This document shows positions 17,058 to 64,000 of a stretch of DNA of 64,000 bases, piece by piece; the stretch's first letter is position 1, and each line of letters opens with the position of its first letter. Origin of the DNA: Schmidtea polychroa. Its lineage: Eukaryota. The DNA lies in assembly GCA_044892525.1 (NCBI GenBank), contig CM097887.1:105688397-105752396 (forward strand), given 5' to 3'. The position numbers were made by a program, and so were the translations under genes. The notes under the pieces were generated by a model. The model saw only the letters and a program-made list of their open reading frames with translations. It ran no database searches and was not told the origin of the DNA.

Positions 17058-17072
17058 TATTTAAGAACTTGA

Positions 17073-38200: not shown

Positions 38201-38272
38201 GGGTCGCTATCTTCTGAAACGAAAAAGAAAAGAAAGCGTAAAAACAGAAAGAAGAAGAATAAAAATCGTTAG
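23257..38272 (+). CDS. Kinectin / ribosome receptor p180 (KTN1/RRBP1 family) ER membrane coiled-coil protein, 12 exons, 1024 aa
   Basis: Exons 23257-23587, 23640-23713, 28491-28604, 28655-30355, 32712-32845, 32897-32975, 35004-35108, 35249-35332, 35383-35495, 37138-37297, 37344-37421 and 38171-38272 (3075 nt, all phases match). N-terminal signal-anchor followed by a Lys-rich stretch, long heptad region, and LDHYRETLEKTENCLQNIQASVDQEENNWK matching the KTN1/RRBP1 motif Y(R/K)S(I/V)LAETEG(M/I)L..LQ.SVE.EE..W. Confidence 0.82.
24718..25004. mobile_element. hAT-type MITE
   Basis: Ends CGGTGCTTCTCATC / CAGTGCATCTCGTC; 8-bp TSD CTTTAAAC / TTTTAAAC (7/8). Confidence 0.7.
25446..25585. repeat. Perfect 48-bp inverted repeat with 44-nt spacer
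   Basis: 25446-25493 is the exact reverse complement of 25538-25585; immediately followed by a hAT-like right end (..CAGGTTGGGAACAACTG, to 25618). Confidence 0.92.
31830..32029. mobile_element. piggyBac-like MITE
   Basis: Ends CCCTTTAGATGCGGATAAAT / CCCTTTAAGCGCTGATAAAT; flanks TTTA and TTAA. Confidence 0.5.
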
Positions 38273-40686
38273 TAAAGGAAAAGATATTTCCATATTTGAT
38301 GTTGTCAATATTTATTTAGTTATGCCTTGTACACCTCTATATTATTTATTATTGGATTTTAGTTATATTACTAACAAGTGCCGACATTTATGAATCCATT
38401 GTTTAAATTCGATTTTTTAAAATATTTTAAAAATTGGCCTATTACAGTTTAAATTATAAAAATTAATAAAAAATTTGTAATTTTTCTTTGCATTGCTATT
38501 GGATACTTTAAACGACACGAGCAATGATTTTGATGTAACAGAATTTGTTTTCTTTCATATTTCCTTTTATTAAATAATGAAATAAACACAGCAAAGATTT
38601 TATTAGAATGCACACCACTCAGACATCCATTTTACGATATATTTTTCCATTATCTCTCCTTTGTACGAACTTGTTGAACAGTAAAATGTGTATAGGAAAT
38701 AAAATTCTCGCATCACGCCAATGCTCAATTAATAATATAAGCGAATAGAATAATTTAATAAAAATAGAGAGAATTAATTGGCTACACAAAAGAACAACAT
38801 TTCAATAATAATAATAATTTTAGGATTTTTTGACTTTAATTTTAACACAGAAATTATAAATATATTTTTCATGTTTTTACATTAACTATTCAATACATGC
38901 CAAATTTATGTTTGAAATTAAAATAAAGGTTTGCACAGTTTTAAAAGAAATTAAATCATAGAACTGGAGGTTATTGATTTAATTTAAATTTCCGCGTTTT
39001 GAAATAAACTAAATTTATTCACAACGTTGCTGGAATATAAATCATGAATACTATAGAAAAGTTAACAAAACAAAAAACATAGAAATAAACTTTAAATTCG
39101 AAATTAAATCAAGATCCAATCAAAAGGCAGATAATTCATATAAAAAGATTAAAATCTTCAAATTGATTTTCAAAATATTCCATAGTTGAAAATTCGCATT
39201 TTTGCACCCTCTTGTCACTATTACATCACAGCGCTTCAATCTCCTCCAAAAAGTATGACGGGATTGTAACAAAAATGTAAATTATCAATAAATTAAGAAC
39301 TAATTAATCATTATTATTGTTGTTGTTTAATTGTGCCAACCACTACCGTTATTAAATTAATCTTCGAAGTCATATTCCTAAAATTCAAATATATACAAAT
39401 ATGAATTACTGTTGGATTTCACTAATGTCTGCATTCATTTGTTTTTAAGTGTCGCATGTGTCATTGTTTAAGTGGATGTATTTTTAACATTTAACCAATA
39501 TTAATTTATGTTTTATTTTCAGGAGTAACACAGCAGTAGAAAGAACTAGTTTTTTATTAAAAAAAATAATATTATTCCAATTTATGTGTGTTATTATTTA
39601 TTATTATTAGTAATGACTAGATTCTGTAAATGTATCTTGTTTTCATTATTCACAGAGATGAAAGTATGAGATGGAATTCCACTTTTCACGCAGACTATCT
39701 TCAATATATTATATTATTACGTCACTGTTATTATAGTTTCATTTTTATTGGCTGAGTTGGCCTGACACAAAAATTTTTATTCAATAATCTAACTTATTAT
39801 TTTTATTGTTATGTTTAGTATTTCTGATGGGAAATTTTTTTGTTTTTTATATTTTATTGTTATAGACATTATTTCTATATTCATTTGATTTCATTTGATT
39901 TAGATGAGTTGTGAGTGATTTGAAAGATGTGAATGATTTTTATCATCAAATGGAAGTTGTTAGCTTCTTGTAAACAAATAGATATTTCATTGAAAGGAAT
40001 TTTTGTTGTTTTATTTATTAATGAAAAGTTTATTTTAAGAGAATTGAAAATGAATGAATATACATATATATTGAATGAAAGTACTTTTTATTTAACATGC
40101 ACTATTTTGTCTGAAGTTAGGATATCTTTTTAGTTTAAAAACCAAATAGATATTTTGATTTTGAGCTTGCATTAATAAAAAATTAATTTTGTTTAACATA
40201 ATGCTCGTTAATTAATATTTATTAGAATTTTTTAATAATGTTTTAAGCAATCTAAACTTGTATTTATGTGCTAATTTTATTGAATTTAGGGAAGTATAAA
40301 TTTCGTAATGTCAAACTAAATTGTAAAATCTAATTCACATTTGGTCTTTGTTCAATTTTCTCTATCTTCATTATTTGGACACGATTAAAAGATTTTTCTA
40401 TATTTTAACACTTATAAAAATGCATTGAAGCACATTATTTCATAAATACTTTTGATACTAAATAATAGATATTAAAAATAATATTTTATTTCTATCTTAC
40501 AAAATTAATGTTATGAGAAACCCATCTCCAATTTTCTTTACATTTAATTCAATGGTAAAATCTAATATTCATATCAATGTTTTAATCGTAATATAATATT
40601 GTTAAATTAACTATAACAAAACCTTGTTTTAAATACATTTAAGAAAATTATTTATTTACTATTGAGATTTGCTTCATAGTTATAAC

Positions 40687-41179
40687 CAGTGGTGGCATTC
40701 AGCCGGTTCGCACGAACCGTTTCTATTCTACCGCTTATTAACAAAAAAAAATTGGAAATATTTACAATAATTTTAAACACATTATAATATATCGTCGGTT
40801 TAAAAGCAGAAATCACTAAGTCAAAAATCAACTTAGGAATTTCTGATTGTATTATAATAGCACGATTGACATAGTGCAATAAATGTCCGCCTAAAAACCT
40901 CAACAATATCAATTTACGACTTATAAGATTTTGCCCAAATAAAGTTGGCATTATAATGATTTAATTTAGTACAAAAAATCAAAATCTTGGAAAATGTACT
41001 TAGTGAATTTTGCTTGTAAACCAACGATATATATGTATATATTTGAAAAAGGCAGTGCCTAAAATTCGTGAGTATCAACAAACATCGATATATTACTGAT
41101 TTATAGTCTTCAAGCTCTCTTTTTATTTCAATGGATAAAATAATCAGTGGTGAAATTGGAAGAAATAAAAGTTATTACA

Positions 41180-41226
<47 letters not shown>

Positions 41227-41384
41227 TAATAAGAAATATAGATATATCTGTTTCTATTATCTTTTTTTATTGAAATCTTTTAAAATAATTTATGAAAAAA
41301 GTTTAATTTTTGGTTGAGTGCGATCCGGTTCTCAAATTTTTGAGGGTGCGAACCGGTTATTAAATATTTTGAATCACACCACTG
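40687..41384. mobile_element. hAT-type MITE containing a (TA)n run
   Basis: TIRs CAGTGGTGGCATTCA / CAGTGGTGTGATTCA; perfect TSD GTTATAAC (40679-86, 41385-92); subterminal CGAACCG(G/T)TT motifs; (TA)n at about 41180-41222. Confidence 0.85.
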
Positions 41385-42317
41385 GTTATAACTTTTCTTG
41401 TCATAGGATTTAAGACTGCAATACATTATTGCGACTTATAAAGTCCAACAACATAAGATTATTGATTATTTTAAGTCATAATTGAAAAAAAACTTGAAAA
41501 TCAATTAGATTTTAGAACTATAAATATGACCTTGAAAAACTTTTAATACGCTGAGATTTTTTATCATTTCAAATAAGAACTTGTAATTTCTAACATAGTA
41601 TACATGATGCTATAGAAAATTTAATTATGGTTAACAACTAAATGTATTTTGAAAACAATCGAATAGATTTCTTGCGAAATCGAAAATTTGTAAAAAGATA
41701 ATGACTCATAATTTCAGTGAAATTTATTTCTCGTAAATCAAAATAATTGTTCTTATATACACTTCATAATCTCAAATATTTATATAACACAAATATCCAA
41801 TAAAGATTCCAACTATTATAACCTTAACATGCATTTTTTGAAAAAAAAAGCCGGCAAAGAAATAATTGTAGAAGAATGTTTATTTGAACTTTATTTAACA
41901 ATACAAAATTACTCAATTTTTATTTTCATAGTATGAGACAGCTCTCGACCAATCACGTTAAGGCGGTTGTTATCATATAAAATCAGTCTATTTCTGTTGA
42001 TTTAACAAATCTTTAAATTAAGTATCATTAATTCAAAAAACAATAAATTATAATATTTTACTAAAATCTTATTTTTTGTTTATTTAAACACATGCAACTA
42101 AGATGAATTTATTGCGTGCATATATATTGCAAATATTTATAACTGAATTAGTGTTACCCACTATTTAATTATCCCACGAAAAGGTTTGCCGAAGACTAAT
42201 ATAAGACTAGAATATTCCTGCAATTTAAAGAAAGTATCTGAATCTAACTGAATATATTTTTTAAAATGGTGAAGGTTAAAAGTGAAGGACCAAATGTTTC
42301 TACGTGTTTGTTTAAAC

Positions 42318-42653
42318 CAGGGGTTTCAAACTCAAACTGGCCTGCGGGCCGCATTAGACTAGTATTATGAGCCGGCGGGCCGCAACATAAATAATTGTTT
42401 TTCAGAACATGTGGAGTCTGAAACTCCGACGTTAATATTTATTTAATTAAAAACTCAACAAAACTAAAAAACATTTTTTTATTATTAAGAATAATAATAA
42501 TAATAATATGTATAACGTCATATGTATAAATAAAAATAATTAAAAAGATAAGTTTTAATTTATACAGCCAAATATGATTTTAATTGTTAAATAAGTTTGG
42601 TTAAATTACAAAACTATGTTTTTTCGTTGCGGGCCGCGTGTTTGAGACCCCTG
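42318..42653. mobile_element. Buster/Charlie-type hAT MITE
   Basis: TIRs CAGGGGTTTCAAAC / CAGGGGTCTCAAAC; TSD GTTTAAAC / GTCTAAAC; three subterminal GCGGGCCGC motifs. Confidence 0.88.
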
Positions 42654-43218
42654 GTCTAAACTTTCTGCTTGTCGAATTAGATTTGTCAACAGTATTGAAA
42701 TAAAAATTGCAATAAAAATTTTTCAATTAAACCGATTTTTAGAAATATTTGATCAATAAAACTTGCTATTTGTGCGGTATTCTATTATGAGGACCACATC
42801 TCAATAAAGAATTATTCACAGGGGTTTCCTAGAGCTTCACACATCTAATTTTAATTTATATCATAATTGTATTTCATGTTAAAGAATTTATCCTTACTTA
42901 TTTTGTAAAAAATCATTCATGAGAAAGTTTATAGGCCAAAACTGGATCCAGTTAACCACAGTAGTGAACCATTTGAATGTTATTATGCACCTTTTGATAA
43001 ATGAACATATGGTCGCATTTCTCACAATTCATCCACCTTATGCTGAATTTACTTTTACCGTTTTTAATATATTGAACTAAAATTACAAAAAAATATTTTA
43101 ATATTAGTAAAAGTGAAATTTTTAGCAATTTATAGGTACTAATATTCATAGAAATGATGACTTGTATTGTCATTTATTAGCTTAATAGTTATGTTAGTTT
43201 TATTACTATATATATATA

Positions 43219-43612
43219 CAGTGCTTCTTTTCTGACGGAACGCTCCGGAACCTTTTTTCGCTGAATCATTTTATTAAATTGACATAAGTTTTGGTTTTTT
43301 GTCATATTTCTATTTCTAACATTTCAAATAGTCCACTACAATCAAATTAAAAGTAATAGTCGTACACCAAATAGAGTGAATCATTACTCCGTGCTTCCTA
43401 TGTGTTATTACTATTATATAAAACACGCTCACGGTGAATATACGCAATTAATATACTACGTCATTAAAATCGTTTCCTGTCGTCGGTAAAAAGTGTAAAT
43501 TTTGTGTCCTGCATAATTATTTTATTTGTTAGCTAATTTCAGCGTCATTTTTTGCATATAAAGGATAGTACAGATTCGTTCCGGCACCTTTTTTTCCAGA
43601 AGAAACGCACTC
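43219..43612. mobile_element. hAT-type MITE
   Basis: Ends CAGTGCTTCTTTTCTG / GAGTGCGTTTCTTCTG with subterminal CGGAACG; flanked on both sides by TATATATA. Confidence 0.65.
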
Positions 43613-45409
43613 TATATATATAATGGGGTAATGGGGATATTTTCTACTCAATATTATGAATTCCACCGTGAAATGTGGGGTATCCTTTAACTTTTTTCTT
43701 TATATAGTTCTAAAATCTATCAAAAAAAATACGAGTGTGAATCTCTTGAGGAGAAGTGTAGTGAAATCCCGACTAGAAATAAAATGAAGAAATTTCGCTA
43801 CTCTAATCAGTCAATCATTAAACATATTTGAAATCGCATCATTACAATGTTTATTACTTGGTTATGACAACATAAAATGTTAACTTTTCTATAGTTGACT
43901 TCGTGGTAACAGAATGTTCCATCCAGTGTTGCATAACTGTGTTTGATATTTATCATTGGTATGTAGCTTATTGTGCTGTTACATCCGTGGTCTTCTTTGT
44001 TATTAACTACTCTGTGGCAGTGAATACTTGCTCTGATGAACTCGTATTCATTGTTATTCTCCAATTGCTCAATAATTTTATGAAGGATGACTGACTGAAA
44101 TTCAGAGATGGCAAAAAATCTGTGAGTAATATATTGTAACAACAATTTTGTTCCCAACTGTTTGCGAACCAGAAAAATCTGCTTCGTTACATGCTATACT
44201 GTTGGAGTTTGTAGAAATTGCAACATGTTCTGTTTTCATTTGTGACATCATCTAAAAGAGTCAATGTTACTTTTCCTTCAGATAGATACGAATGATGACG
44301 CAGGAACTTTTCAAAGCAACACTGAAAATATTTTCATTTTCCTCTGCATATTTGTCAATTTCTGAGAAGCAGAACTCCTTGTCCCCGTTTATTTTAATCA
44401 TTTGTAATGTCTTTGTGGCTAGAATATCGAAGAAATCTTCCAGCTCTTCCTAACACCTATATTCATTTTGCCGTAATTAGGGTCTGCAATAATCTTGGAA
44501 ATCGTCAATCTGATTTTTTAGCCCATTTTTTGATCTATTTTCAAAATCTTTCCAACTTCATCATCCATTATCCATTTGTCATAGTACAAACCATGCTACT
44601 GTCGATATTATTTTAAACATTGAAAGTCGTCTTTTTGAATAGTAAATTTTCACTTTTCATTTTTTGCACTTTTTAAATTAAAAATTTTTGAGATTATAAT
44701 ACTGTATAAATTTTGTATAATTTGTCAAGGAATTCGTTATTTTTAGATTTTAAAAATTATTCATTTGTATTCTTTTTTAGTTTATATTGTAATCCCAAAA
44801 TCATGTGAATATTTTAGTATGATAACTGGATTCCTTTTTCAGTAATTTATACAAGATTCCGGGATTACTAACTTTAGATGGAATACCAGAGAATGTTTGA
44901 CTTTGTTTTTCCATATTTTTCTCTAATTTACCCTATTCCCTGAATACGTTTGTTATGTTATGTATTATAATTGTTATATTAGAATTGTTATAGTATGAAG
45001 AGGAATTTATAGTGCCAAGTAGAGTCACCTTTAAAATCTGTATTGAGTCTGATTAAATTAATATTTAATTATAGGATAAGGTTATAACAAAATGATAAAA
45101 TTTTTACAACTTTTATTAAACTAAAAAATAATAACACGCACCAGACTGATTCCATAAAATCATTCTTCCTGCATTCTTTGCATATTTTTCGATCGTTAGT
45201 TTTTTCAATTTTCTTTATTATAAGAACTTTTTTTCCAAATTTCACCACTGATTTCTTTTCCATTGACATTGTATTTAGTTTGTAGATTTTAAGTGAGTTG
45301 CCCTTTTACACATTTTCCTATTCTCAACTATATGACTCACGCTTTTCAATCCTCAATTTCTAAGGAAATTCATTTCAATTCGTTGATTTTATAACAAAGC
45401 ATACCATTG

Positions 45410-46590
45410 ATCTTTCTGACTATATTATGTCTTGATGAAACTAGTTTATTTACACATGTTCCATTAAATGAAACTATAGATCTTTGCTCAGTATTGTGGA
45501 ATGATAATATGTTGAATAATCAGATTTTAGATGAAGTTGCATTTCGTGAATTGTTGATTTTTGCCACTTCTAATGGTGCATTTCTTTTTAATGATAATTT
45601 GTTTCAACAAGTTGTTGGTGTAATAACGGGATCACTATTAGCTCCAACTCTTACATCAATTTTTCTTTAAAAAAATTTGAGAAAAAATTTCAGATTATCC
45701 TCTTGTAGGTCTTATGATATATTAACGTTACGTCGATGATATTCTTTTAGTATTTTATAGTTCTGATGATGTCCTTTCTTTTTCAAATCATATGAACGGG
45801 ATTCATTCAAATATAAAGCTTACAATGAAAGAAGAAGCTAATTCTTTTCTACCAATTTTAGATTTGTGAGTGGAAAAAAGAGTTAATGGTTTTTAAACAT
45901 AAATGTACACAAAGCCAACGGATACAGGCATATACGCTACCTCTAAAAGCTTTTGTGACTTTAAATATAATAAAAATATGATTAAGGGTTTGATTTTTAG
46001 ATATACATACGCTCGTTTCTCTTTTGAATAAAAATGATAATTCAAAGGGTTTTGTATAAAGATCGACTAAGGAAACCATTAATCATCTTTTGATTGCACC
46101 TGACGAAAATAATGAAAATTGCACTTCATTTAATGACGATAAACCTTTAAAATCTCATGTTTTAGTTATTCTATATTCTGAAGGCTTTAAAAGTGTTAAG
46201 TTTTCTGTAATGAAATCATTAGTCAATTCTAATTTATTTAAAATAGTATCAAAATCTTTAAAATCATTAAATATATCTAAAAATAAATTTCAAGCCCAAT
46301 AGGTTTAGTGTTTGTTCTAATGTATAAGTTTTCATGTAAAAGGATCAATAACATTGGAGAGACTTACCGTTATCTCCACAAACGGGTTCAGGAACATAGA
46401 CTATTGAAAGACGAGAGTCATATATATTGAACATAGGAAAATTTGTAAAGAGGCAAATAACTTAAAATCTTAAAGTTTTATATAAAAACTTTAACAATAT
46501 ACTGGAAAGAATTTTATGGGAGGCACTGTCAATTTATTCACAATCTCCCACAATTATCATTCAACCAGCAACAAATTTATTGAGATTATT
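45410..46590 (+). mobile_element. Degenerate PLE: RT core through GIY-YIG endonuclease
   Basis: LDETSLFTHVPLNETI, GVITGSLLAPTL, RYVDDIL, NGIHSNIKLTMKEE..LPILD, YTKPTDTG, and later YKFSC...IGETYRYLHKRVQEH; multiple stops and frameshifts. Confidence 0.9.
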
Positions 46591-47968
46591 TAATTAACTC
46601 ATTTAATCATATTACATCATTGTTTCCGCATTTCCGTTAACATAGGTTACTATCGAAAACGGATGATGAGGGTATATATTTCGTTTGCTGGGCGTTTCCG
46701 AGTTTTCATTAAAAACTGGCCATCGTTTATAGATATATGTGTGTGTATTTAATTTTACAATTTATTAAAATAAAATTTATTATAAAATATTTTTCAAATT
46801 TAAATTAGAAAGTACTAAAAATATAAAAACAATCTCAGAACTTAAGCAGTATGATAAGCAATATTATATTGGTTTCATATTTTGATACGTTGGTTATGCC
46901 ATGACTGAAATATTGAACACTTACGTACCAAACGTTTATAATTATAACATTTATAATAATATTATTATCATTGGATTTACGCGTGTGAAAATTTATAAGT
47001 CTCTCAAATATGTGGAAATAGGTCAAAATTAGATTGCAAAATTTGATTCTATCAAACAAATCAAGTTAAATAGAATTTTGTATAAAATATTATTAGTATT
47101 CGTTAAAAATACAAAATGAATGCATTAGTTAATCCTTTCACACCGAGAACAGTATATTTTGGCACTAAAAATATTGACCAACAGAAAAAACAAAAATTTT
47201 TCAAGTATTTTTTCCATCGAAACGGAGTAGATTTGGAAAAAATATTTATAAATAAGCAATTGATATTAGACTGATGATGAAGATAAATGTCATTGATTGC
47301 AATTTTTTATTTACGATTAATATATATTTTATATACATATAATGATATTATAAATTAATAAATGTTAAATATTTACCTAGTCATTGTTATTTTACTCTTA
47401 TAATATTTATATGTTTGTGCGTGAAATGTTGTGTTAAAGAGAATTTGTAGAGCCCAGTCGAGTTTCCTTTAAAATCTGTCAGGACAGCTTGGATGCTTGT
47501 ATCTACGCCATTGCGACTGTGATATTAAAAATAAAATAACAATAATAACTTTTAACAAAATCTTTATTAAAATTTATTAAAACCTTTATCAAATATTTTA
47601 AATTCCAGTCTTCTTCCTTTCTAAGTGTTTTACTTCATTTCCGATTTCCAGCAAAATTTATAATTTCTTCCATAAATTTAATTTATTGATTCCGGATCTC
47701 TATAGTACAACTACAGATATCTTGTTTGTTTCCTTTTGAGCGAAAGGAAAGGGGAAAAATTAAACTTGATAAGAAAAAATACAGTCAAAAAAATAAATAT
47801 TATAAATACGACTTATTTATTAGCGAAAAATAATATTATTATAATTATTATATTACTATTAGAAATATAAATTTAAAAAAAAGGTTCTTAAAATGATAAC
47901 AAATTATCCCTGTATGAAATAATAGGAATAAAATTTCAAAATATAATATTAAATATTTCTCATTATAG

Positions 47969-50900
47969 ACGGAGAAAATTGAAAATATAATAAATTCAAT
48001 TAAAGGATTTTCGGATAAATTGCAAAATACAGTTCAAATAATAGAAAACAGACAAAGAGAAATATTCATACAAAGGCAAACGGTAAATGATTATGTAATC
48101 AACAGATGTAATTAAAGATTTTAGATGAAAACAGTTATAACCTACAACATTGAGGAATTACAATTAATGAAAAACGAAAAAGAGAAAATAAAAAGAGTAG
48201 ATGAAAATTTAACGATACAAGAAAAACTAAAAGAGAAAATAAACAAATTGAAAAAAGAAAGAGAAAAACTAAAGAAAATTATAATAAATCTTAAGGAAGA
48301 AAATCAACAAGGAAAATATGAAAGTGAAAGAAAAAGTAAGAGACAAAGGAATGAAAACCGATCTGAGGATAAACAAATAAAAGGTTTGATTAAAGAGAAT
48401 AGCGAACTATTAAAACAAGTAAATGTCACAAAAGAAATAACGCAATCTATAAACGAAAGATTACAAATAGAAATTACAAATAGTGAAAATTTATATAGAG
48501 AAAAGGAAAAATACAAGAATGCAGAAAATGTATTAAGAAATGAAAATATAAAATTATTAGAAGAAATCGATATATTGCGTAAAGAAATGCATCAGAAATA
48601 CGAAGGGTTCACTTTGACTTTGAAAGAGAAAGAAACAATTATCAGTGAATTGCATTCAATCAAAGTATCTCTCGAATCAAACATTGATCAAATGGCTCGA
48701 AGAGTGAGAGAAACAACAGAAATATCTGGTCTTGAGAGTGAGCTTGATGTCAAATTAGTGGAGTTATACCAAGAAATCGACACAAAGAATCTGGATATTG
48801 TCACTCTTAAAAATGAGAAACTGGCGCTGTTGACAAATATTGAAAGATTGCAAACGGAATTGCGTGAAAGTAAAGAAAAGTACGTAGATTCATTCGAACA
48901 GATGACAAGGACAGTCGTTCATAAATCCTTCGCTACCCAAGACGATGTTGAAGTTATTGAAAATGTAATCAAACCGGAAATTGCTTCTCAAATTTCGGCA
49001 ATCAGTGTGACTGACGATGCAAAACTCATTGAAGAATTGCAAACGAGAATCGAAGATCTTTTGAAAGAAATTCAACAACTTCGCAATGAGAAATTGGATT
49101 CTAAATTCACTACAACAGATCAAACAAGAATTCTTGAAACTTCTAAGTCTTCAGAAATGACTTCGATTGTAGTTCACGAAACAGCAACAGATGGGTCTGA
49201 CGGCATTTTGAATGAGATTTTCCAGGAATTAGAGGAAAAGAATCGAGAAATTTCAATGCTTCAAGACCAGAAAAGCTCTCTGATACATGAAATTGATCAA
49301 ATGAAACGAGAACTTATTAACAAAGACGCAGATGTAGAATTGAAATTGAAAGAAAAGAACAGTTTCATTATTGAATTGAAAAGGCAGAAAACGGAGTTGG
49401 AACAAAATGTCGAATATTTGACAAAGGAAATGAGCGAATGCGTGATTTACCGAAAGGATGGAGACGCGAATGAGAAACTTGTTGAGTTGTATAAAGAACT
49501 AGAGATTATGAACCACGATTTGATGTTGTTGAGAAATGAAAAAGTTACACTCTTAGAGGATATCGATAATATGCGCAGGGAAACGCATCAGAAATACGAA
49601 AGGTTCACTTTGACTTTGAAAGAGAAAGAAACAATTATCAGTGAATTGCATTCAATCAAAGTATCTCTCGAATCAAACATTGATCAAATGGCTCGAAGAG
49701 TGAGAGAAACAACAGAAATATCTGGTCTTGAGAGTGAGCTTGATGTCAAATTAGTGGAGTTATACCAAGAAATCGACACAAAGAATCTGGATATTGTCAC
49801 TCTTAAAAATGAGAAACTGGCGCTGTTGACAAATATTGAAAGATTGCAAACGGAATTGCGTGAAAGTAAAGAAAAGTACGTAGATTCATTCGAACAGATG
49901 ACAAGGACAGTCGTTCATAAATCCTTCGCTACCCAAGACGATGTTGAAGTTGATGAAAATGTAATCAAACCGGAAATTGCTTCTCAAATTTCGGCAATCA
50001 GTGTGACTGACGATGCAAAACTCATTGAAGAATTGCAAACGAGAATCGAAGATCTTTTGAAAGAAATTCAACAACTTCGCAATGAGAAATTGGATTCAAA
50101 ATTCACTACAACAGATCAAACAAGAATTCTTGAAACTTCTACGTCTTCAGAAATGACTTCGATTGTAGTTCACGAAACAGCAACAGATGGGTCTGACGGC
50201 ATTTTGAATGAGATTTTCCAGGAATTAGAGGAAAAGAATCGAGAAATTTCAATGCTTCAAGACCAGAAAAGCTCTCTGATACATGAAATTGATCAAATGA
50301 AACGAGAACTTATTAACAAAGACGCAGATGTAGAATTGAAATTGAAAGAAAAGAACAGTTTCATTATTGAATTGAAAAGGCAGAAAACGGAGTTGGAACA
50401 AAATGTCGAATATTTGACAAAGGAAATGAGCGAATGCGTGATTTACCGAAAGGATGGAGACGCGAATGAGAAACTTGTTGAGTTGTATAAAGAACTAGAG
50501 ATTAAGAACCACGATTTGATGTTGTTGAGAAATGAAAAAGTTACACTCTTAGAGGATATCGATAATATGCGCAGGGAAACGCATCAGAAATACGAAAGGT
50601 TCACTTTGACTTTGAAAGAGAAAGAAACAATTATCAGTGAATTGCATTCAATCAAAGTATCTCTCGAATCAAACATTGATCAAATGGCTCGAAGAGTGAG
50701 AGAAACAACAGAAATATCTGGTCTTGAGAGTGAGCTTGATGTCAAATTAGTGGAGTTATACCAAGAAATCGACACAAAGAATCTGGATATTGTCACTCTT
50801 AAAAATGAGAAACTGGCGCTGTTGACAAATATTGAAAGATTGCAAACGGAATTGCGTGAAAGTAAAGAAAAGTACGTAGATTCATTCGAACAGATGACAA

Positions 50901-53900
50901 GGACAGTCGTTCATAAATCCTTCGCTACCCAAGACGATGTTGAAGTTGATGAAAATGTAATCAAACCGGAAATTGCTTCTCAAATTTCGGCAATCAGTGT
51001 GACTGACGATGCAAAACTCATTGAAGAATTGCAAACGAGAATCGAAGATCTTTTGAAAGAAATTCAACAACTTCGCAATGAGAAATTGGATTCAAAATTC
51101 ACTACAACAGATCAAACAAGAATTCTTGAAACTTCTACGTCTTCAGAAATGACTTCGATTGTAGTTCACGAAACAGCAACAGATGGGTCTGACGGCATTT
51201 TGAATGAGATTTTCCAGGAATTAGAGGAAAAGAATCGAGAAATTTCAATGCTTCAAGACCAGAAAAGCTCTCTGATACATGAAATTGATCAAATGAAACG
51301 AGAACTTATTAACAAAGACGCAGATGTAGAATTGAAATTGAAAGAAAAGAACAGTTTCATTATTGAATTGAAAAGGCAGAAAACGGAGTTGGAACAAAAT
51401 GTCGAATATTTGACAAAGGAAATGAGCGAATGCGTGATTTACCGAAAGGATGGAGACGCGAATGAGAAACTTGTTGAGTTGTATAAAGAACTAGAGATTA
51501 AGAACCACGATTTGATGTTGTTGAGAAATGAAAAAGTTACACTCTTAGAGGATATCGATAATATGCGCAGGGAAACGCATCAGAAATACGAAAGGTTCAC
51601 TTTGACTTTGAAAGAGAAAGAAACAATTATCAGTGAATTGCATTCAATCAAAGTATCTCTCGAATCAAACATTGATCAAATGGCTCGAAGAGTGAGAGAA
51701 ACAACAGAAATATCTGGTCTTGAGAGTGAGCTTGATGTCAAATTAGTGGAGTTATACCAAGAAATCGACACAAAGAATCTGGATATTGTCACTCTTAAAA
51801 ATGAGAAACTGGCGCTGTTGACAAATATTGAAAGATTGCAAACGGAATTGCGTGAAAGTAAAGAAAAGTACGTAGATTCATTCGAACAGATGACAAGGAC
51901 AGTCGTTCATAAATCCTTCGCTACCCAAGACGATGTTGAAGTTGATGAAAATGTAATCAAACCGGAAATTGCTTCTCAAATGACGGCAATCAGTGTGACT
52001 GACGATGCAAAACTCATTGAAGAATTGCAAACGAGAATCGAAGATCTTTTGAAAGAAATTCAACAACTTCGCAATGAGAAATTGGATTCTAAATTCACTA
52101 CAACAGATCAAACAAGAATTCTTGAAACTTCTACGTCTTCAGAAATGACTTCGATTGTAGTTCACGAAACAGCAACAGGTGGGTCTGACGGCATTTTGAA
52201 TGAGATTTTCCAGGAATTAGAGGAAAAGAATCGAGAAATTTCAATGCTTCAAGACCACAAAAGCTCTCTGATACATGAAATTGATCAAATGAAACGAGAA
52301 CTTATTAACAAAGACGCAGATGTAGAATTGAAATTGAAAGAAAAGAACAGTTTCATTATTGAATTGGAAAGGCAGAAAACGGAGTTGGAACAAAATGTCG
52401 AATATTTGACAAAGGAAATGAGCGAATGCGTGATTTACCGAAAGGATGGAGACGCGAATGAGAAACTTGTTGAGTTGTATAAAGAACTAGAGATTAAGAA
52501 CCACGATTTGATGTTGTTGAGAAATGAAAAAGTTACACTCTTAGAGGATATCGATAATATGCGTAGGGAAATGCATCAGAAATACGAAAGGTTCACTTTG
52601 ACTTTGAAAGAGAAAGAAACAATTATCAGTGAATTGCATTCAATCAAAGTATCTCTCGAATCAAACATTGATCAAATGGCTCGAAGAGTGAGAGAAACAA
52701 CAGAAATATCTGGTCTTGAGAGTGAGCTTGATGTCAAATTAGTGGAGTTATACCAAGAAATCGACACAAAGAATCTGGATATTGTCACTCTTAAAAATGA
52801 GAAACTGGCGCTGTTGACAAATATTGAAAGATTGCAAACGGAATTGCGTGAAAGTAAAGAAAAGTACGTAGATTCATTCGAACAGATGACAAGGACAGTC
52901 GTTCATAAATCCTTCGCTACCCAAGACGATGTTGAATTTGATGAAAATGTAATCAAACCGGAAATTGCTTCTCAAATGACGGCAATCAGTGTGACTGACG
53001 ATGCAAAACTCATTGAAGAATTGCAAACGAGAATCGAAGATCTTTTGAAAGAAATTCAACAACTTCGCAATGAGAAATTGGATTCTAAATTCACTACAAC
53101 AGATCAAACAAGAATTCTTGAAACTTCTACGTCTTCAGAAATGACTTCGATTGTAGTTCACGAAACAGCAACAGATGGGTCTGACGGCATTTTGAATGAG
53201 ATTTTCCAGGAATTAGAGGAAAAGAATCGAGAAATTTCAATGCTTCAAGACCACAAAAGCTCTCTGATACATGAAATTGATCAAATGAAACGAGAACTTA
53301 TTAACAAAGACGCAGATGTAGAATTGAAATTGAAAGAAAAGAACAGTTTCATTATTGAATTGGAAAGGCAGAAAACGGAGTTGGAACAAAATGTCGAATA
53401 TTTGACAAAGGAAATGAGCGAATGCGTGATTTACCGAAAGGATGGAGACGCGAATGAGAAACTTGTTGAGTTGTATAAAGAACTAGAGATTAAGAACCAC
53501 GATTTGATGTTGTTGAGAAATGAAAAAGTTACACTCTTAGAGGATATCGATAATATGCGTAGGGAAATGCATCAGAAATACGAAAGGTTCACTTTGACTT
53601 TGAAAGAGAAAGAAACAATTATCAGTGAATTGCATTCAATCAAAGTATCTCTCGAATCAAACATTGATCAAATGGCTCGAAGAGTGAGAGAAACAACAGA
53701 AATATCTGGTCTTGAGAGTGAGCTTGATGTCAAATTAGTGGAGTTATACCAAGAAATCGACACAAAGAATCTGGATATTGTCACTCTTAAAAATGAGAAA
53801 CTGGCGCTGTTGACAAATATTGAAAGATTGCAAACGGAATTGCGTGAAAGTAAAGAAAAGTACGTAGATTCATTCGAACAGATGACAAGGACAGTCGTTC

Positions 53901-56900
53901 ATAAATCCTTCGCTACCCAAGACGATGTTGAAGTTGATGAAAATGTAATCAAACCGGAAATTGCTTCTCAAATGACGGCAATCAGTGTGACTGACGATGC
54001 AAAACTCATTGAAGAATTGCAAACGAGAATCGAAGATCTTTTGAAAGAAATTCAACAACTTCGCAATGAGAAATTGGATTCTAAATTCACTACAACAGAT
54101 CAAACAAGAATTCTTGAAACTTCTACGTCTTCAGAAATGACTTCGATTGTAGTTCACGAAACAGCAACAGGTGGGTCTGACGGCATTTTGAATGAGATTT
54201 TCCAGGAATTAGAGGAAAAGAATCGAGAAATTTCAATGCTTCAAGACCACAAAAGCTCTCTGATACATGAAATTGATCAAATGAAACGAGAACTTATTAA
54301 CAAAGACGCAGATGTAGAATTGAAATTGAAAGAAAAGAACAGTTTCATTATTGAATTGGAAAGGCAGAAAACGGAGTTGGAACAAAATGTCGAATATTTG
54401 ACAAAGGAAATGAGCGAATGCGTGATTTACCGAAAGGATGGAGACGCGAATGAGAAACTTGTTGAGTTGTATAAAGAACTAGAGATTAAGAACCACGATT
54501 TGATGTTGTTGAGAAATGAAAAAGTTACACTCTTAGAGGATATCGATAATATGCGTAGGGAAATGCATCAGAAATACGAAAGGTTCACTTTGACTTTGAA
54601 AGAGAAAGAAACAATTATCAGTGAATTGCATTCAATCAAAGTATCTCTCGAATCAAACATTGATCAAATGGCTCGAAGAGTGAGAGAAACAACAGAAATA
54701 TCTGGTCTTGAGAGTGAGCTTGATGTCAAATTAGTGGAGTTATACCAAGAAATCGACACAAAGAATCTGGATATTGTCACTCTTAAAAATGAGAAACTGG
54801 CGCTGTTGACAAATATTGAAAGATTGCAAACGGAATTGCGTGAAAGTAAAGAAAAGTACGTAGATTCATTCGAACAGATGACAAGGACAGTCGTTCATAA
54901 ATCCTTCGCTACCCAAGACGATGTTGAATTTGATGAAAATGTAATCAAACCGGAAATTGCTTCTCAAATGACGGCAATCAGTGTGACTGACGATGCAAAA
55001 CTCATTGAAGAATTGCAAACGAGAATCGAAGATCTTTTGAAAGAAATTCAACAACTTCGCAATGAGAAATTGGATTCTAAATTCACTACAACAGATCAAA
55101 CAAGAATTCTTGAAACTTCTACGTCTTCAGAAATGACTTCGATTGTAGTTCACGAAACAGCAACAGATGGGTCTGACGGCATTTTGAATGAGATTTTCCA
55201 GGAATTAGAGGAAAAGAATCGAGAAATTTCAATGCTTCAAGACCAGAAAAGCTCTCTGATACATGGAATTGATCAAATGAAACGAGAACTTATTAACAAA
55301 GACGCAGATGTAGAATTGAAATTGAAAGAAAAGAACAGTTTCATTATTGAATTGGAAAGGCAGAAAACGGAGTTGGAACAAAATGTCGAATATTTGACAA
55401 AGGAAATGAGCGAATGCGTGATTTACCGAAAGGATGGAGACGCGAATGAGAAACTTGTTGAGTTGTATAAAGAACTAGAGATTAAGAACCACGATTTGAT
55501 GTTGTTGAGAAATGAAAAAGTTACACTCTTAGAGGATATCGATAATATGCGTAGGGAAATGCATCAGAAATACGAAAGGTTCACTTTGACTTTGAAAGAG
55601 AAAGAAACAATTATCAGTGAATTGCATTCAATCAAAGTATCTCTCGAATCAAACATTGATCAAATGGCTCGAAGAGTGAGAGAAACAACAGAAATATCTG
55701 GTCTTGAGAGTGAGCTTGATGTCAAATTAGTGGAGTTATACCAAGAAATCGACACAAAGAATCTGGATATTGTCACTCTTAAAAATGAGAAACTGGCGCT
55801 GTTGACAAATATTGAAAGATTGCAAACGGAATTGCGTGAAAGTAAAGAAAAGTACGTAGATTCATTCGAACAGATGACAAGGACAGTCGTTCATAAATCC
55901 TTCGCTACCCAAGACGATGTTGAATTTGATGAAAATGTAATCAAACCGGAAATTGCTTCTCAAATGACGGCAATCAGTGTGACTGACGATGCAAAACTCA
56001 TTGAAGAATTGCAAACGAGAATCGAAGATCTTTTGAAAGAAATTCAACAACTTCGCAATGAGAAATTGGATTCTAAATTCACTACAACAGATCAAACAAG
56101 AATTCTTGAAACTTCTACGTCTTCAGAAATGACTTCGATTGTAGTTCACGAAACAGCAACAGATGGGTCTGACGGCATTTTGAATGAGATTTTCCAGGAA
56201 TTAGAGGAAAAGAATCGAGAAATTTCAATGCTTCAAGACCACAAAAGCTCTCTGATACATGGAATTGATCAAATGAAACGAGAACTTATTAACAAAGACG
56301 CAGATGTAGAATTGAAATTGAAAGAAAAGAACAGTTTCATTATTGAATTGGAAAGGCAGAAAACGGAGTTGGAACAAAATGTCGAATATTTGACAAAGGA
56401 AATGAGCGAATGCGTGATTTACCGAAAGGATGGAGACGCGAATGAGAAACTTGTTGAGTTGTATAAAGAACTAGAGATTAAGAACCACGATTTGATGTTG
56501 TTGAGAAATGAAAAAGTTACACTCTTAGAGGATATCGATAATATGCGTAGGGAAATGCATCAGAAATACGAAAGGTTCACTTTGACTTTGAAAGAGAAAG
56601 AAACAATTATCAGTGAATTGCATTCAATCAAAGTATCTCTCGAATCAAACATTGATCAAATGGCTCGAAGAGTGAGAGAAACAACAGAAATATCTGGTCT
56701 TGAGAGTGAGCTTGATGTCAAATTAGTGGAGTTATACCAAGAAATCGACACAAAGAATCTGGATATTGTCACTCTTAAAAATGAGAAACTGGCGCTGTTG
56801 ACAAATATTGAAAGATTGCAAACGGAATTGCGTGAAAGTAAAGAAAAGTACGTAGATTCATTCGAACAGATGACAAGGACAGTCGTTCATAAATCCTTCG

Positions 56901-59900
56901 CTACCCAAGACGATGTTGAAGTTGATGAAAATGTAATCAAACCGGAAATTGCTTCTCAAATGACGGCAATCAGTGTGACTGACGATGCAAAACTCATTGA
57001 AGAATTGCAAACGAGAATCGAAGATCTTTTGAAAGAAATTCAACAACTTCGCAATGAGAAATTGGATTCTAAATTCACTACAACAGATCAAACAAGAATT
57101 CTTGAAACTTCTACGTCTTCAGAAATGACTTCGATTGTAGTTCACGAAACAGCAACAGATGGGTCTGACGGCATTTTGAATGAGATTTTCCAGGAATTAG
57201 AGGAAAAGAATCGAGAAATTTCAATGCTTCAAGACCACAAAAGCTCTCTGATACATGAAATTGATCAAATGAAACGAGAACTTATTAACAAAGACGCAGA
57301 TGTAGAATTGAAATTGAAAGAAAAGAACAGTTTCATTATTGAATTGGAAAGGCAGAAAACGGAGTTGGAACAAAATGTCGAATATTTGACAAAGGAAATG
57401 AGCGAATGCGTGATTTACCGAAAGGATGGAGACGCGAATGAGAAACTTGTTGAGTTGTATAAAGAACTAGAGATTAAGAACCACGATTTGATGTTGTTGA
57501 GAAATGAAAAAGTTACACTCTTAGAGGATATCGATAATATGCGTAGGGAAATGCATCAGAAATACGAAAGGTTCACTTTGACTTTGAAAGAGAAAGAAAC
57601 AATTATCAGTGAATTGCATTCAATCAAAGTATCTCTCGAATCAAACATTGATCAAATGGCTCGAAGAGTGAGAGAAACAACAGAAATATCTGGTCTTGAG
57701 AGTGAGCTTGATGTCAAATTAGTGGAGTTATACCAAGAAATCGACACAAAGAATCTGGATATTGTCACTCTTAAAAATGAGAAACTGGCGCTGTTGACAA
57801 ATATTGAAAGATTGCAAACGGAATTGCGTGAAAGTAAAGAAAAGTACGTAGATTCATTCGAACAGATGACAAGGACAGTCGTTCATAAATCCTTCGCTAC
57901 CCAAGACGATGTTGAAGTTGATGAAAATGTAATCAAACCGGAAATTGCTTCTCAAATGACGGCAATCAGTGTGACTGACGATGCAAAACTCATTGAAGAA
58001 TTGCAAACGAGAATCGAAGATCTTTTGAAAGAAATTCAACAACTTCGCAATGAGAAATTGGATTCTAAATTCACTACAACAGATCAAACAAGAATTCTTG
58101 AAACTTCTACGTCTTCAGAAATGACTTCGATTGTAGTTCAAGAAACAGCAACAGATGGGTCTGACGGCATTTTGAATGAGATTTTCCAGGAATTAGAGGA
58201 AAAGAATCGAGAAATTTCAATGCTTCAAGACCACAAAAGCTCTCTGATACATGAAATTGATCAAATGAAACGAGAACTTATTAACAAAGACGCAGATGTA
58301 GAATTGAAATTGAAAGAAAAGAACAGTTTCATTATTGAATTGGAAAGGCAGAAAACGGAGTTGGAACAAAATGTCGAATATTTGACAAAGGAAATGAGCG
58401 AATGCGTGATTTACCGAAAGGATGGAGACGCGAATGAGAAACTTGTTGAGTTGTATAAAGAACTAGAGATTAAGAACCACGATTTGATGTTGTTGAGAAA
58501 TGAAAAAGTTACACTCTTAGAGGATATCGATAATATGCGTAGGGAAATGCATCAGAAATACGAAAGGTTCACTTTGACTTTGAAAGAGAAAGAAACAATT
58601 ATCAGTGAATTGCATTCAATCAAAGTATCTCTCGAATCAAACATTGATCAAATGGCTCGAAGAGTGAGAGAAACAACAGAAATATCTGGTCTTGAGAGTG
58701 AGCTTGATGTCAAATTAGTGGAGTTATACCAAGAAATCGACACAAAGAATCTGGATATTGTCACTCTTAAAAATGAGAAACTGGCGCTGTTGACAAATAT
58801 TGAAAGATTGCAAACGGAATTGCGTGAAAGTAAAGAAAAGTACGTAGATTCATTCGAACAGATGACAAGGACAGTCGTTCATAAATCCTTCGCTACCCAA
58901 GACGATGTTGAAGTTGATGAAAATGTAATCAAACCGGAAATTGCTTCTCAAATGACGGCAATCAGTGTGACTGACGATGCAAAACTCATTGAAGAATTGC
59001 AAACGAGAATCGAAGATCTTTTGAAAGAAATTCAACAACTTCGCAATGAGAAATTGGATTCTAAATTCACTACAACAGATCAAACAAGAATTCTTGAAAC
59101 TTCTACGTCTTCAGAAATGACTTCGATTGTAGTTCACGAAACAGCAACAGATGGGTCTGACGGCATTTTGAATGAGATTTTCCAGGAATTAGAGGAAAAG
59201 AATCGAGAAATTTCAATGCTTCAAGACCACAAAAGCTCTCTGATACATGAAATTGATCAAATGAAACGAGAACTTATTAACAAAGACGCAGATGTAGAAT
59301 TGAAATTGAAAGAAAAGAACAGTTTCATTATTGAATTGGAAAGGCAGAAAACGGAGTTGGAACAAAATGTCGAATATTTGACAAAGGAAATGAGCGAATG
59401 CGTGATTTACCGAAAGGATGGAGACGCGAATGAGAAACTTGTTGAGTTGTATAAAGAACTAGAGATTAAGAACCACGATTTGATGTTGTTGAGAAATGAA
59501 AAAGTTACACTCTTAGAGGATATCGATAATATGCGTAGGGAAATGCATCAGAAATACGAAAGGTTCACTTTGACTTTGAAAGAGAAAGAAACAATTATCA
59601 GTGAATTGCATTCAATCAAAGTATCTCTCGAATCAAACATTGATCAAATGGCTCGAAGAGTGAGAGAAACAACAGAAATATCTGGTCTTGAGAGTGAGCT
59701 TGATGTCAAATTAGTGGAGTTATACCAAGAAATCGACACAAAGAATCTGGATATTGTCACTCTTAAAAATGAGAAACTGGCGCTGTTGACAAATATTGAA
59801 AGATTGCAAACGGAATTGCGTGAAAGTAAAGAAAAGTACGTAGATTCATTCGAACAGATGACAAGGACAGTCGTTCATAAATCCTTCGCTACCCAAGACG

Positions 59901-62900
59901 ATGTTGAAGTTGATGAAAATGTAATCAAACCGGAAATTGCTTCTCAAATGACGGCAATCAGTGTGACTGACGATGCAAAACTCATTGAAGAATTGCAAAC
60001 GAGAATCGAAGATCTTTTGAAAGAAATTCAACAACTTCGCAATGAGAAATTGGATTCTAAATTCACTACAACAGATCAAACAAGAATTCTTGAAACTTCT
60101 ACGTCTTCAGAAATGACTTCGATTGTAGTTCAAGAAACAGCAACAGATGGGTCTGACGGCATTTTGAATGAGATTTTCCAGGAATTAGAGGAAAAGAATC
60201 GAGAAATTTCAATGCTTCAAGACCACAAAAGCTCTCTGATACATGAAATTGATCAAATGAAACGAGAACTTATTAACAAAGACGCAGATGTAGAATTGAA
60301 ATTGAAAGAAAAGAACAGTTTCATTATTGAATTGGAAAGGCAGAAAACGGAGTTGGAACAAAATGTCGAATATTTGACAAAGGAAATGAGCGAATGCGTG
60401 ATTTACCGAAAGGATGGAGACGCGAATGAGAAACTTGTTGAGTTGTATAAAGAACTAGAGATTAAGAACCACGATTTGATGTTGTTGAGAAATGAAAAAG
60501 TTACACTCTTAGAGGATATCGATAATATGCGTAGGGAAATGCATCAGAAATACGAAAGGTTCACTTTGACTTTGAAAGAGAAAGAAACAATTATCAGTGA
60601 ATTGCATTCAATCAAAGTATCTCTCGAATCAAACATTGATCAAATGGCTCGAAGAGTGAGAGAAACAACAGAAATATCTGGTCTTGAGAGTGAGCTTGAT
60701 GTCAAATTAGTGGAGTTATACCAAGAAATCGACACAAAGAATCTGGATATTGTCACTCTTAAAAATGAGAAACTGGCGCTGTTGACAAATATTGAAAGAT
60801 TGCAAACGGAATTGCGTGAAAGTAAAGAAAAGTACGTAGATTCATTCGAACAGATGACAAGGACAGTCGTTCATAAATCCTTCGCTACCCAAGACGATGT
60901 TGAAGTTGATGAAAATGTAATCAAACCGGAAATTGCTTCTCAAATGACGGCAATCAGTGTGACTGACGATGCAAAACTCATTGAAGAATTGCAAACGAGA
61001 ATCGAAGATCTTTTGAAAGAAATTCAACAACTTCGCAATGAGAAATTGGATTCTAAATTCACTACAACAGATCAAACAAGAATTCTTGAAACTTCTACGT
61101 CTTCAGAAATGACTTCGATTGTAGTTCACGAAACAGCAACAGATGGGTCTGACGGCATTTTGAATGAGATTTTCCAGGAATTAGAGGAAAAGAATCGAGA
61201 AATTTCAATGCTTCAAGACCACAAAAGCTCTCTGATACATGAAATTGATCAAATGAAACGAGAACTTATTAACAAAGACGCAGATGTAGAATTGAAATTG
61301 AAAGAAAAGAACAGTTTCATTATTGAATTGGAAAGGCAGAAAACGGAGTTGGAACAAAATGTCGAATATTTGACAAAGGAAATGAGCGAATGCGTGATTT
61401 ACCGAAAGGATGGAGACGCGAATGAGAAACTTGTTGAGTTGTATAAAGAACTAGAGATTAAGAACCACGATTTGATGTTGTTGAGAAATGAAAAAGTTAC
61501 ACTCTTAGAGGATATCGATAATATGCGTAGGGAAATGCATCAGAAATACGAAAGGTTCACTTTGACTTTGAAAGAGAAAGAAACAATTATCAGTGAATTG
61601 CATTCAATCAAAGTATCTCTCGAATCAAACATTGATCAAATGGCTCGAAGAGTGAGAGAAACAACAGAAATATCTGGTCTTGAGAGTGAGCTTGATGTCA
61701 AATTAGTGGAGTTATACCAAGAAATCGACACAAAGAATCTGGATATTGTCACTCTTAAAAATGAGAAACTGGCGCTGTTGACAAATATTGAAAGATTGCA
61801 AACGGAATTGCGTGAAAGTAAAGAAAAGTACGTAGATTCATTCGAACCGATGACAAGGACAGTCGTTCATAAATCCTTCGCTACCCAAGACGATGTTGAA
61901 GTTGATGAAAATGTAATCAAACCGGAAATTGCTTCTCAAATGACGGCAATCAGTGTGACTGACGATGCAAAACTCATTGAAGAATTGCAAACGAGAATCG
62001 AAGATCTTTTGAAAGAAATTCAACAACTTCGCAATGAGAAATTGGATTCTAAATTCACTACAACAGATCAAACAAGAATTCTTGAAACTTCTACGTCTTC
62101 AGAAATGACTTCGATTGTAGTTCACGAAACAGCAACAGATGGGTCTGACGGCATTTTGAATGAGATTTTCCAGGAATTAGAGGAAAAGAATCGAGAAATT
62201 TCAATGCTTCAAGACCAGAAAAGCTCTCTGATACATGGAATTGATCAAATGAAACGAGAACTTATTAACAAAGACGCAGATGTAGAATTGAAATTGAAAG
62301 AAAAGAACAGTTTCATTATTGAATTGGAAAGGCAGAAAACGGAGTTGGAACAAAATGTCGAATATTTGACAAAGGAAATGAGCGAATGCGTGATTTACCG
62401 AAAGGATGGAGACGCGAATGAGAAACTTGTTGAGTTGTATAAAGAACTAGAGATTAAGAACCACGATTTGATGTTGTTGAGAAATGAAAAAGTTACACTC
62501 TTAGAGGATATCGATAATATGCGTAGGGAAATGCATCAGAAATACGAAAGGTTCACTTTGACTTTGAAAGAGAAAGAAACAATTATCAGTGAATTGCATT
62601 CAATCAAAGTATCTCTCGAATCAAACATTGATCAAATGGCTCGAAGAGTGAGAGAAACAACAGAAATATCTGGTCTTGAGAGTGAGCTTGATGTCAAATT
62701 AGTGGAGTTATACCAAGAAATCGACACAAAGAATCTGGATATTGTCACTCTTAAAAATGAGAAACTGGCGCTGTTGACAAATATTGAAAGATTGCAAACG
62801 GAATTGCGTGAAAGTAAAGAAAAGTACGTAGATTCATTCGAACAGATGACAAGGACAGTCGTTCATAAATCCTTCGCTACCCAAGACGATGTTGAAGTTG

Positions 62901-64000
62901 ATGAAAATGTAATCAAACCGGAAATTGCTTCTCAAATGACGGCAATCAGTGTGACTGACGATGCAAAACTCATTGAAGAATTGCAAACGAGAATCGAAGA
63001 TCTTTTGAAAGAAATTCAACAACTTCGCAATGAGAAATTGGATTCTAAATTCACTACAACAGATCAAACAAGAATTCTTGAAACTTCTACGTCTTCAGAA
63101 ATGACTTCGATTGTAGTTCACGAAACAGCAACAGATGGGTCTGACGGCATTTTGAATGAGATTTTCCAGGAATTAGAGGAAAAGAATCGAGAAATTTCAA
63201 TGCTTCAAGACCACAAAAGCTCTCTGATACATGAAATTGATCAAATGAAACGAGAACTTATTAACAAAGACGCAGATGTAGAATTGAAATTGAAAGAAAA
63301 GAACAGTTTCATTATTGAATTGGAAAGGCAGAAAACGGAGTTGGAACAAAATGTCGAATATTTGACAAAGGAAATGAGCGAATGCGTGATTTACCGAAAG
63401 GATGGAGACGCGAATGAGAAACTTGTTGAGTTGTATAAAGAACTAGAGATTAAGAACCACGATTTGATGTTGTTGAGAAATGAAAAAGTTACACTCTTAG
63501 AGGATATCGATAATATGCGTAGGGAAATGCATCAGAAATACGAAAGGTTCACTTTGACTTTGAAAGAGAAAGAAACAATTATCAGTGAATTGCATTCAAT
63601 CAAAGTATCTCTCGAATCAAACATTGATCAAATGGCTCGAAGAGTGAGAGAAACAACAGAAATATCTGGTCTTGAGAGTGAGCTTGATGTCAAATTAGTG
63701 GAGTTATACCAAGAAATCGACACAAAGAATCTGGATATTGTCACTCTTAAAAATGAGAAACTGGCGCTGTTGACAAATATTGAAAGATTGCAAACGGAAT
63801 TGCGTGAAAGTAAAGAAAAGTACGTAGATTCATTCGAACAGATGACAAGGACAGTCGTTCATAAATCCTTCGCTACCCAAGACGATGTTGAAGTTGATGA
63901 AAATGTAATCAAACCGGAAATTGCTTCTCAAATGACGGCAATCAGTGTGACTGACGATGCAAAACTCATTGAAGAATTGCAAACGAGAATCGAAGATCTT
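47969..64000 (+). CDS. Giant repetitive coiled-coil protein coding region, 3'-incomplete: small exon 47969-48082 plus giant exon 48125 to beyond 64000
   Basis: Exon 47969-48082 (38 codons, phase 0), 42-nt GT-AG intron, then an open frame from ATG 48125 to 64000 (15876 nt = 5292 codons, last codons ..RIEDL) with no stop or frameshift. E/K/L-rich heptads. Missing from the ORF track, presumably because it has no stop in the window. Confidence 0.88.
48584..64000 (+). repeat. Coding tandem array, 996-bp (332-aa) unit, about 15.5 copies
   Basis: Antisense ORFs recur exactly every 996 bp (48890, 49886 ... 62834). Units differ only by a few point substitutions and no indels. Confidence 0.98.

Follow-up and report, generated by a model that had tools for sequence, protein, structure and literature searches.

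The stretch of DNA analysed here, a 64,000-nucleotide (nt) window of the Schmidtea polychroa genome (contig CM097887.1, positions 105,688,397 to 105,752,396 of the forward strand), ends within a giant internal exon built largely from near-identical tandem repeats. On the + strand a single uninterrupted frame of 5,292 codons runs from 48125 to 64000 and is still open at the last base of the window, as the initial annotation had reported; the frame is absent from the track of open reading frames (ORFs) because ORFs that run off the source sequence go unlisted. A TAG triplet at 48122-48124 adjoins the start of the frame and doubles as the AG of a 42-nt intron. The first 153 codons (48125-48583) are not repeated, are strongly A-rich and encode a lysine- and glutamate-rich segment, of which the last 31 residues form a degenerate copy (45% identity) of the last 31 residues of the repeat unit.

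The remainder of the frame (48584-64000) is the tandem array. Autocorrelation of its DNA gave 996 nt as the single sharp period, with 97.8% identity and an onset near 48,550, and with unit 0 placed at 48584 each unit comprises 996 nt, or 332 codons. From this position the window holds 15 full units and a 477-nt piece (15.48 copies), each unit showing 0-10 differences from the consensus; the translated consensus is the very unit quoted in the initial annotation, which had estimated about 15.5 near-identical repeats of 332 amino acids (aa). The most divergent and oldest-looking units of the array are units 0-2, at its 5′ edge; units 8, 10, 12 and 14 are identical to the consensus, and consensus units and units carrying H198Q take turns across units 8-12. 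The array was missed by Tandem Repeats Finder because the longest period considered there was 500. A masked unit was also considered as the origin of the 996 N letters present in the window and was rejected, as these fall into five separate runs far upstream (3957-36085); the agreement of their count with the 996-nt period is coincidental.

The other five frames of the array each contain 154-487 stops, their longest open stretches being 31-86 codons, and at the base composition of the array the chance of an open unit of 332 codons is about 1e-12. The composition at the three codon positions also has coding character. We read the array as coding because its frame is continuous with the 153 unique codons and because an upstream coding exon, described below, shares homology with the unit. 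The peptides predicted from each unit include those around SFEQMTR and ILETSTSSEMTSIVVHETATDGSDGILNEIFQELEEK.

The copy number of the unit was examined with Logan contigs of four public runs, two of DNA (X1 and X5) and two of RNA (X7 and X9), which were compared with 43600-49579, a segment comprising the flank and exactly one unit. In DNA run X1, which matched the flank without differences, flank contigs had a depth of 41-48 and the unit contig one of 1,687, a ratio of about 35-38. In DNA run X5, in which the flank carried many single-nucleotide polymorphisms (a different individual or strain), the corresponding depths were 34-42 and 1,175-1,299, a ratio of about 30-33. A contig with the unit-to-unit junction, in which the sequence goes back by 996 nt, was present in all four runs, DNA and RNA. 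Word depth gives copy number only roughly, and further copies in other parts of the genome would raise the depth of the unit, but it nevertheless excludes the presence of only a few copies. DNA depth indicates about 30-38 unit copies, against 15.5 in the window; the array is not over-expanded in the assembly, and the amplification at near identity that had been suspected from the sequence is real.

The array is transcribed, and spliced from at least one upstream exon. A 586-nt contig of RNA run X7 (record 19) matched 47971-48081 and then 48124-48568, from which a 42-nt GT-AG intron (48083-48124) had been removed. The exon spliced to the giant exon (47969-48082, + strand) comprises 38 codons with phase 0 at both ends, and the join is in frame. 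A contig of RNA run X9, which bears another organism label and is nearly identical in sequence, covers the same junction, and contigs of both runs cover the part of the giant exon that lies in the window. Transcripts of the array were found in several RNA runs from two organism labels, and its initial description as an exon is thus borne out by spliced RNA. Of the two findings that the initial annotation had named as refuting its interpretation, a lack of transcription and a true number of only a few copies, neither was obtained. In run X7 the unit contigs had a depth of about 2,550 and the unique part one of 24, a ratio of about 105 that is higher than the 30-38 found in DNA; 3′ bias, transcription starting internally or an uneven recovery of contigs might account for the excess.

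The X7 record 19 contig opens with 30 letters from a still earlier exon, which lies outside 43600-47968 or within the repeat-rich 45.2-46.8 kb. Another X7 contig leaves the unit at 49544 (nt 961 of the unit) and continues for 72 letters (CAGCTATTCTTGTTGACTTTCATAGTTTGA…) not found in the window; this exit could represent the end of the array, an alternative splice or a chimera. The region 45000-47000 is multi-copy throughout, with a depth 10-200 times that of the flank and many alternative joints, and looks like nested repeats within the intron that precedes exon 47969. Within it, a segment of about 60 nt (45215-45277) has a summed DNA word depth of about 3.7e5, compared with about 44 for single-copy flank. 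RNA run X7 contains the segment too, and on either side of it hundreds of contigs diverge. This depth suggests several thousand copies, and the segment is probably the conserved core or the end of a very abundant short mobile element.

Further upstream on the + strand lies a chain of coding-like exons with compatible phases, separated in part by short GT-AG introns of 52, 50, 46 and, before the giant exon, 42 nt. A G+C content of about 25% and the occurrence of 42-52-nt introns alongside introns of many kilobases are in keeping with a planarian-type flatworm. The probable first coding exon (23257-23587) encodes a methionine, a 24-residue hydrophobic segment (IFIISLIVTFLALLLSAYFFYFYL), the motif KPKK and a lysine-rich stretch followed by an acidic one. 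A 52-nt GT-AG intron (23588-23639) parts it from a predicted second coding exon (23640-23713), which is in phase with the first and contains the start of a coiled coil. Next in the chain, an exon of 38 codons (28491-28604) is joined across a 50-nt GT-AG intron (28605-28654) to a large coiled-coil exon of about 567 codons (approximately 28655-30355, with a donor at 30356 or 30360). Several weaker candidate exons were noted in the sequence between 32.7 and 36.2 kb. Inspection of the sequence also yielded two predicted coiled-coil exons, at 37138-37297 and 37344-37421, separated by a 46-nt GT-AG intron (37298-37343). The latter has 26 codons and ends in phase 0 at a GTATGT donor without a stop, and the gene to which it belongs must therefore continue downstream. 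Phase-compatible exon chains between 30.4 and 47.9 kb are, however, easily found by chance.

Of the words sampled from 23257-23714, DNA runs contained all (1.00) and RNA runs a fraction of 0.84, about the value expected for the two exons without their 52-nt intron. The six RNA runs that contain the giant exon are the same six that contain exons 1 and 2, apparently without the intron. The large upstream exon and the C-terminal half of the repeat unit are related (35% identity over 127 aa, E 8e-11). We consider it fairly likely that all of the + strand exons from 23257 to the giant exon constitute one gene, and we infer that the anchor exon and the giant exon share a transcript. Judged from its sequence, exon 1 probably encodes a signal anchor that would leave the bulk of the protein in the cytosol. 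Just upstream of this putative first exon, a short ORF (22684-22863, + strand) resembles by eye a retroviral integrase core (…GQPKTIVTDQGRQFES…).

The unit itself has an internal repeat structure. Three stretches of 44 residues, with starts at unit residues 53, 205 and 294, were used to build a hidden Markov model (HMM), which recovered all three copies together with weaker ones at 14-43 and 255-283; the underlying motif was ELxxKNxxLxxLxNEKxxLxxxIDxM. The same HMM matched the unique sequence with which the giant exon begins (7e-8) and the upstream exon 28655-30355 (7e-9), both of which contain diverged copies. On this comparison the repeat is hierarchical, an older 44-residue motif having given rise to the 332-residue unit, and the unit to the array.

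AlphaFold2 predicted for one unit helices at residues 13-116, 142-183, 205-288 and 293-331, with low confidence at 116-143 and 175-205. When a circularly permuted unit was modelled, a 157-residue helix starting at residue 293 passed unbroken over the junction between units and ended at residue 117 of the next, with a predicted local distance difference test (pLDDT) score of about 90 or above across the junction. A KDGD turn alone parts the 84-residue helix (205-288) from this 157-residue helix. After these long helices the prediction places a disordered linker, rich in S, T and V and about 25 residues long, then a helix of 30-40 residues (about 5 nm) and a second linker of about 30 residues. 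A heptad signal, that is, a 3.5-residue hydrophobic period, was found over the predicted helix blocks. The alternation of heptad blocks with S/T/V-rich linkers proposed in the initial annotation agrees with this model, in which long helices alternate with low-confidence S/T-rich linkers; its estimate of a total length of hundreds of nanometres was too low. Each unit is predicted to contain about 240 long-helix residues, which would measure about 36 nm if straight, and 23-38 units would therefore span roughly 0.8-1.4 micrometres, counting the helices alone and leaving the linkers uncounted. By its predicted fold the product would belong with long alpha-helical rods, which form a structural class and not a homologous family.

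Database searches placed the unit in no known family. Pfam searches (E up to 1) with one unit, with the exon start plus unit 0, with exon 1 and with the 570-aa exon returned sub-threshold noise only. Rib_recp_KP_reg was matched neither in exon 1 and the 570-aa exon nor in the unique start of the giant exon and one unit; no S100 or EF-hand domain was matched in any exon tested, and no golgin family in the parts tested. A phmmer search of 1.84 billion representative proteins with the exon start plus unit 0 found no homologue; its lone match, P0001, is a bacterial S/T-rich repeat protein that aligns to the linker only and was rejected as spurious. A word-indexed search with residues 1-500 of the giant ORF returned nothing, the ESM Atlas gave only generic coiled-coil clusters with low recognition, and metagenome locus scans with the unit and with the protein P0002 described below were likewise negative; a look-up of contigs that encode P0002 had none recorded. 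Foldseek against the PDB returned only long-helix chains of axonemal filaments, none of them significant; their best E value, 0.02, is no evidence of kinship. No relevant paper emerged from a literature search on the size of the unit and on giant coiled coils with repeats in Schmidtea. The sole real relative found was P0002 (UniParc UPI0005FFC8E6, 635 aa), which is 74% identical to exons 28491-30355 and has exons 28491-28604 and 28655-30355 joined without the 50-nt intron; the identity of 74% marks the upstream exon as conserved coding sequence. P0002 is an orthologue from a related species or else a paralogue.

Comparison of the units revealed 17 distinct variants, 15 nonsynonymous and 2 synonymous, against a site ratio of 4.07 (p = 0.55). 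This variation is indistinguishable from neutrality, and the array is therefore young or homogenised. The pattern of divergence along the array is that expected for a young array or for one homogenised by unequal exchange.

The rest of the window contains features of other kinds. A satellite with a 23-nt unit (CACTTTATATTGGCCCCATTTGT), present in about 51 copies and with a higher-order period of 250 nt, occupies 19384-20549; none of the three + strand frames is interrupted within it, which results in three spurious ORFs (377-392 aa). At 15953-17072 on the + strand, what remains of a pogo/Tigger-type transposase is split into separate ORFs that match HTH_Tnp_Tc5, CENP-B_N and DDE_1. No Rfam family was detected at the gathering threshold across the whole window, and no tRNA was found by a tRNA scan.

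Taken together, these results lead us to favour, with moderate confidence, a genuine lineage-restricted animal gene with an internal exon that encodes a jointed alpha-helical rod, probably anchored in the endoplasmic reticulum (ER), the copy number of the units setting its length. Under this proposal the exon would have grown by recent tandem amplification of the 996-nt coding unit, and the units would be kept alike by ongoing unequal crossing-over or gene conversion. The product, which we infer to be translated and to pair as a coiled coil, would be a jointed rod of 8,000-12,000 residues on the scale of a micrometre. An N-terminal hydrophobic segment followed by basic residues makes it probable that the rod is anchored in the ER membrane and lies for the most part in the cytosol, where it may serve as a long tether, spacer or scaffold whose length follows the number of units. 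It is possible, although rather doubtful, that this would amount to a flatworm membrane-anchored jointed micrometre rod of about 1 MDa or more, encoded by a 23-38-kb exon, in which the number of units varies between individuals and the length sets a cellular distance such as the spacing of organelles or the size of a secretory or ciliary structure.

Several points weigh against the anchored rod. Single-chain AlphaFold2 models cannot separate a parallel dimeric rod from intramolecular helical hairpins. The unit has no homologue among the 1.84 billion representatives, hence its conservation cannot be shown, and, given that its variation looks neutral, the intactness of every copy is not itself evidence of selection and may reflect youth only. 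The hydrophobic segment of exon 1 could also be read as a cleaved signal peptide, with a possible site after LSA at residue 18, in which case the product would be secreted. Moreover, the link over 25 kb from the anchor to the giant exon rests on compatible phases and on shared RNA libraries that are perhaps from whole animals, and no read bridges 37421 to 47969 or connects the anchor exon with the giant exon.

Among the alternative explanations, a tolerated runaway expansion has a modest chance of being correct. The exon would be real and maybe translated, but the number of units would be without function and would simply drift, a coiled-coil gene having by chance come to contain a recombination-prone 1-kb repeat. 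The neutral pattern of differences among the units is in its favour, as are the greater divergence of edge units than of core units and the alternation of consensus and variant units (8-12) that unequal exchange predicts; the depth ratio also differs between the two DNA samples (about 35-38 in X1 and 30-33 in X5). Against drift stand the high RNA depth over the unit and the complete lack of frameshifts and stops in at least 15.5 kb, though just about 0.9 stops would be expected among 17 variants. Such an expansion is compatible with a rod-like product and departs from the favoured interpretation solely on whether length matters. The array could alternatively encode a polyprotein precursor, one chain being cut in the linkers or at basic sites (ARRVRE, NMRR|E) into coiled-coil monomers of about 332 residues. 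A single giant exon of near-identical units, each about 1 kb long, is the layout of filaggrin, RR and RRVR sites and disordered linkers occur once per unit, and the gene probably begins with an ER-targeting segment. We nevertheless regard cleavage as improbable: an RR site sits at the unit junction, across which the high-confidence helix is predicted to be unbroken; the basic residues that follow the hydrophobic segment speak for a cytosolic orientation, out of reach of furin-type proteases; and neither an S100 nor any other precursor head was recognised by Pfam.

Still less probable is a transcribed but untranslated satellite, whose frame would be open merely through recent descent from one open unit. 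The neutral variation among units, the lack of homologues and the unit-to-unique depth ratio, which is about 105 in RNA and about 35 in DNA, are all consistent with such a satellite. However, even a single unit is very unlikely to be open by chance, and the other five frames are full of stops. The frame is also continuous with the 153 unique codons and, once spliced, with the upstream exon, and the coding exon further upstream to which the unit is homologous shows 74% conservation in P0002. An assembly artefact, in which a short repeat had been over-expanded, would be understandable given that near-identical 1-kb units are difficult to assemble, but it is already contradicted by the data and barely credible: independent short-read runs indicate more copies rather than fewer, and the 996-nt back-joint occurs in DNA and RNA runs alike.

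The locus is of interest for several reasons. Coding arrays whose kilobase units are >99% identical are routinely collapsed, annotated wrongly or passed over, and the present unit is abundantly transcribed yet absent from 1.84 billion representative proteins. The nested 44-residue motif, 332-residue unit and array of >20 units are a clear case of repeats that evolve hierarchically, and in concert, within a coding exon. If the product is indeed a membrane-anchored rod of about a micrometre that tracks copy number, it would offer a rare natural test of how the length of a coiled-coil tether sets cellular geometry, in animals where RNA interference is routine; were its length to set a cellular distance, it would be a molecular ruler that occurs in nature and can be tuned genetically.

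One of the closest known parallels is profilaggrin (FLG), a fused-type giant-exon repeat gene, in which one giant exon contains 10-12 near-identical units of about 1 kb (324 residues) whose copy number varies between individuals. Profilaggrin and the nematode polyprotein allergens are polyproteins that are cut into unit monomers. The giant exon described here shares with profilaggrin its organisation in near-identical units of about 1 kb; however, the units of profilaggrin are disordered, histidine-rich and cleaved, whereas those of the planarian array are predicted to be helical, with a helix continuous across the junction, and the S100 head of filaggrin-type proteins was absent from the exons tested with Pfam. 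In overall layout the predicted product resembles the vertebrate ER-anchored coiled-coil proteins p180/RRBP1 and kinectin, with which it would share an N-terminal hydrophobic anchor, a lysine-rich basic stretch and a very long cytosolic coiled coil, provided that the anchor and the array are linked as we suppose. In p180 a transmembrane domain at the N-terminus is combined with a basic region, a domain of 54 short tandem repeats and a long coiled coil (PMC3326322). p180 and kinectin also have in common a conserved coiled-coil domain at the C-terminus; the 3′ end of the present gene lies beyond the window. No sequence similarity to p180 or kinectin was found, and the repeats of p180 are short basic peptides and not 332-residue coiled-coil units; the resemblance would thus be one of layout and not of sequence, and does not place the protein in their family. 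Giant cytoskeletal coiled coils and tethers of the golgin and rootletin type are likewise long alpha-helical rods with flexible breaks that act as tethers or rulers, but they are not made of >20 units at >99% nucleotide identity and gave no family-level match, and golgins are anchored at the C-terminus, which has a membrane anchor or a GRIP/GRAB domain. We therefore view the protein as an orphan within the known class of giant repetitive coiled-coil proteins, unusual in degree.

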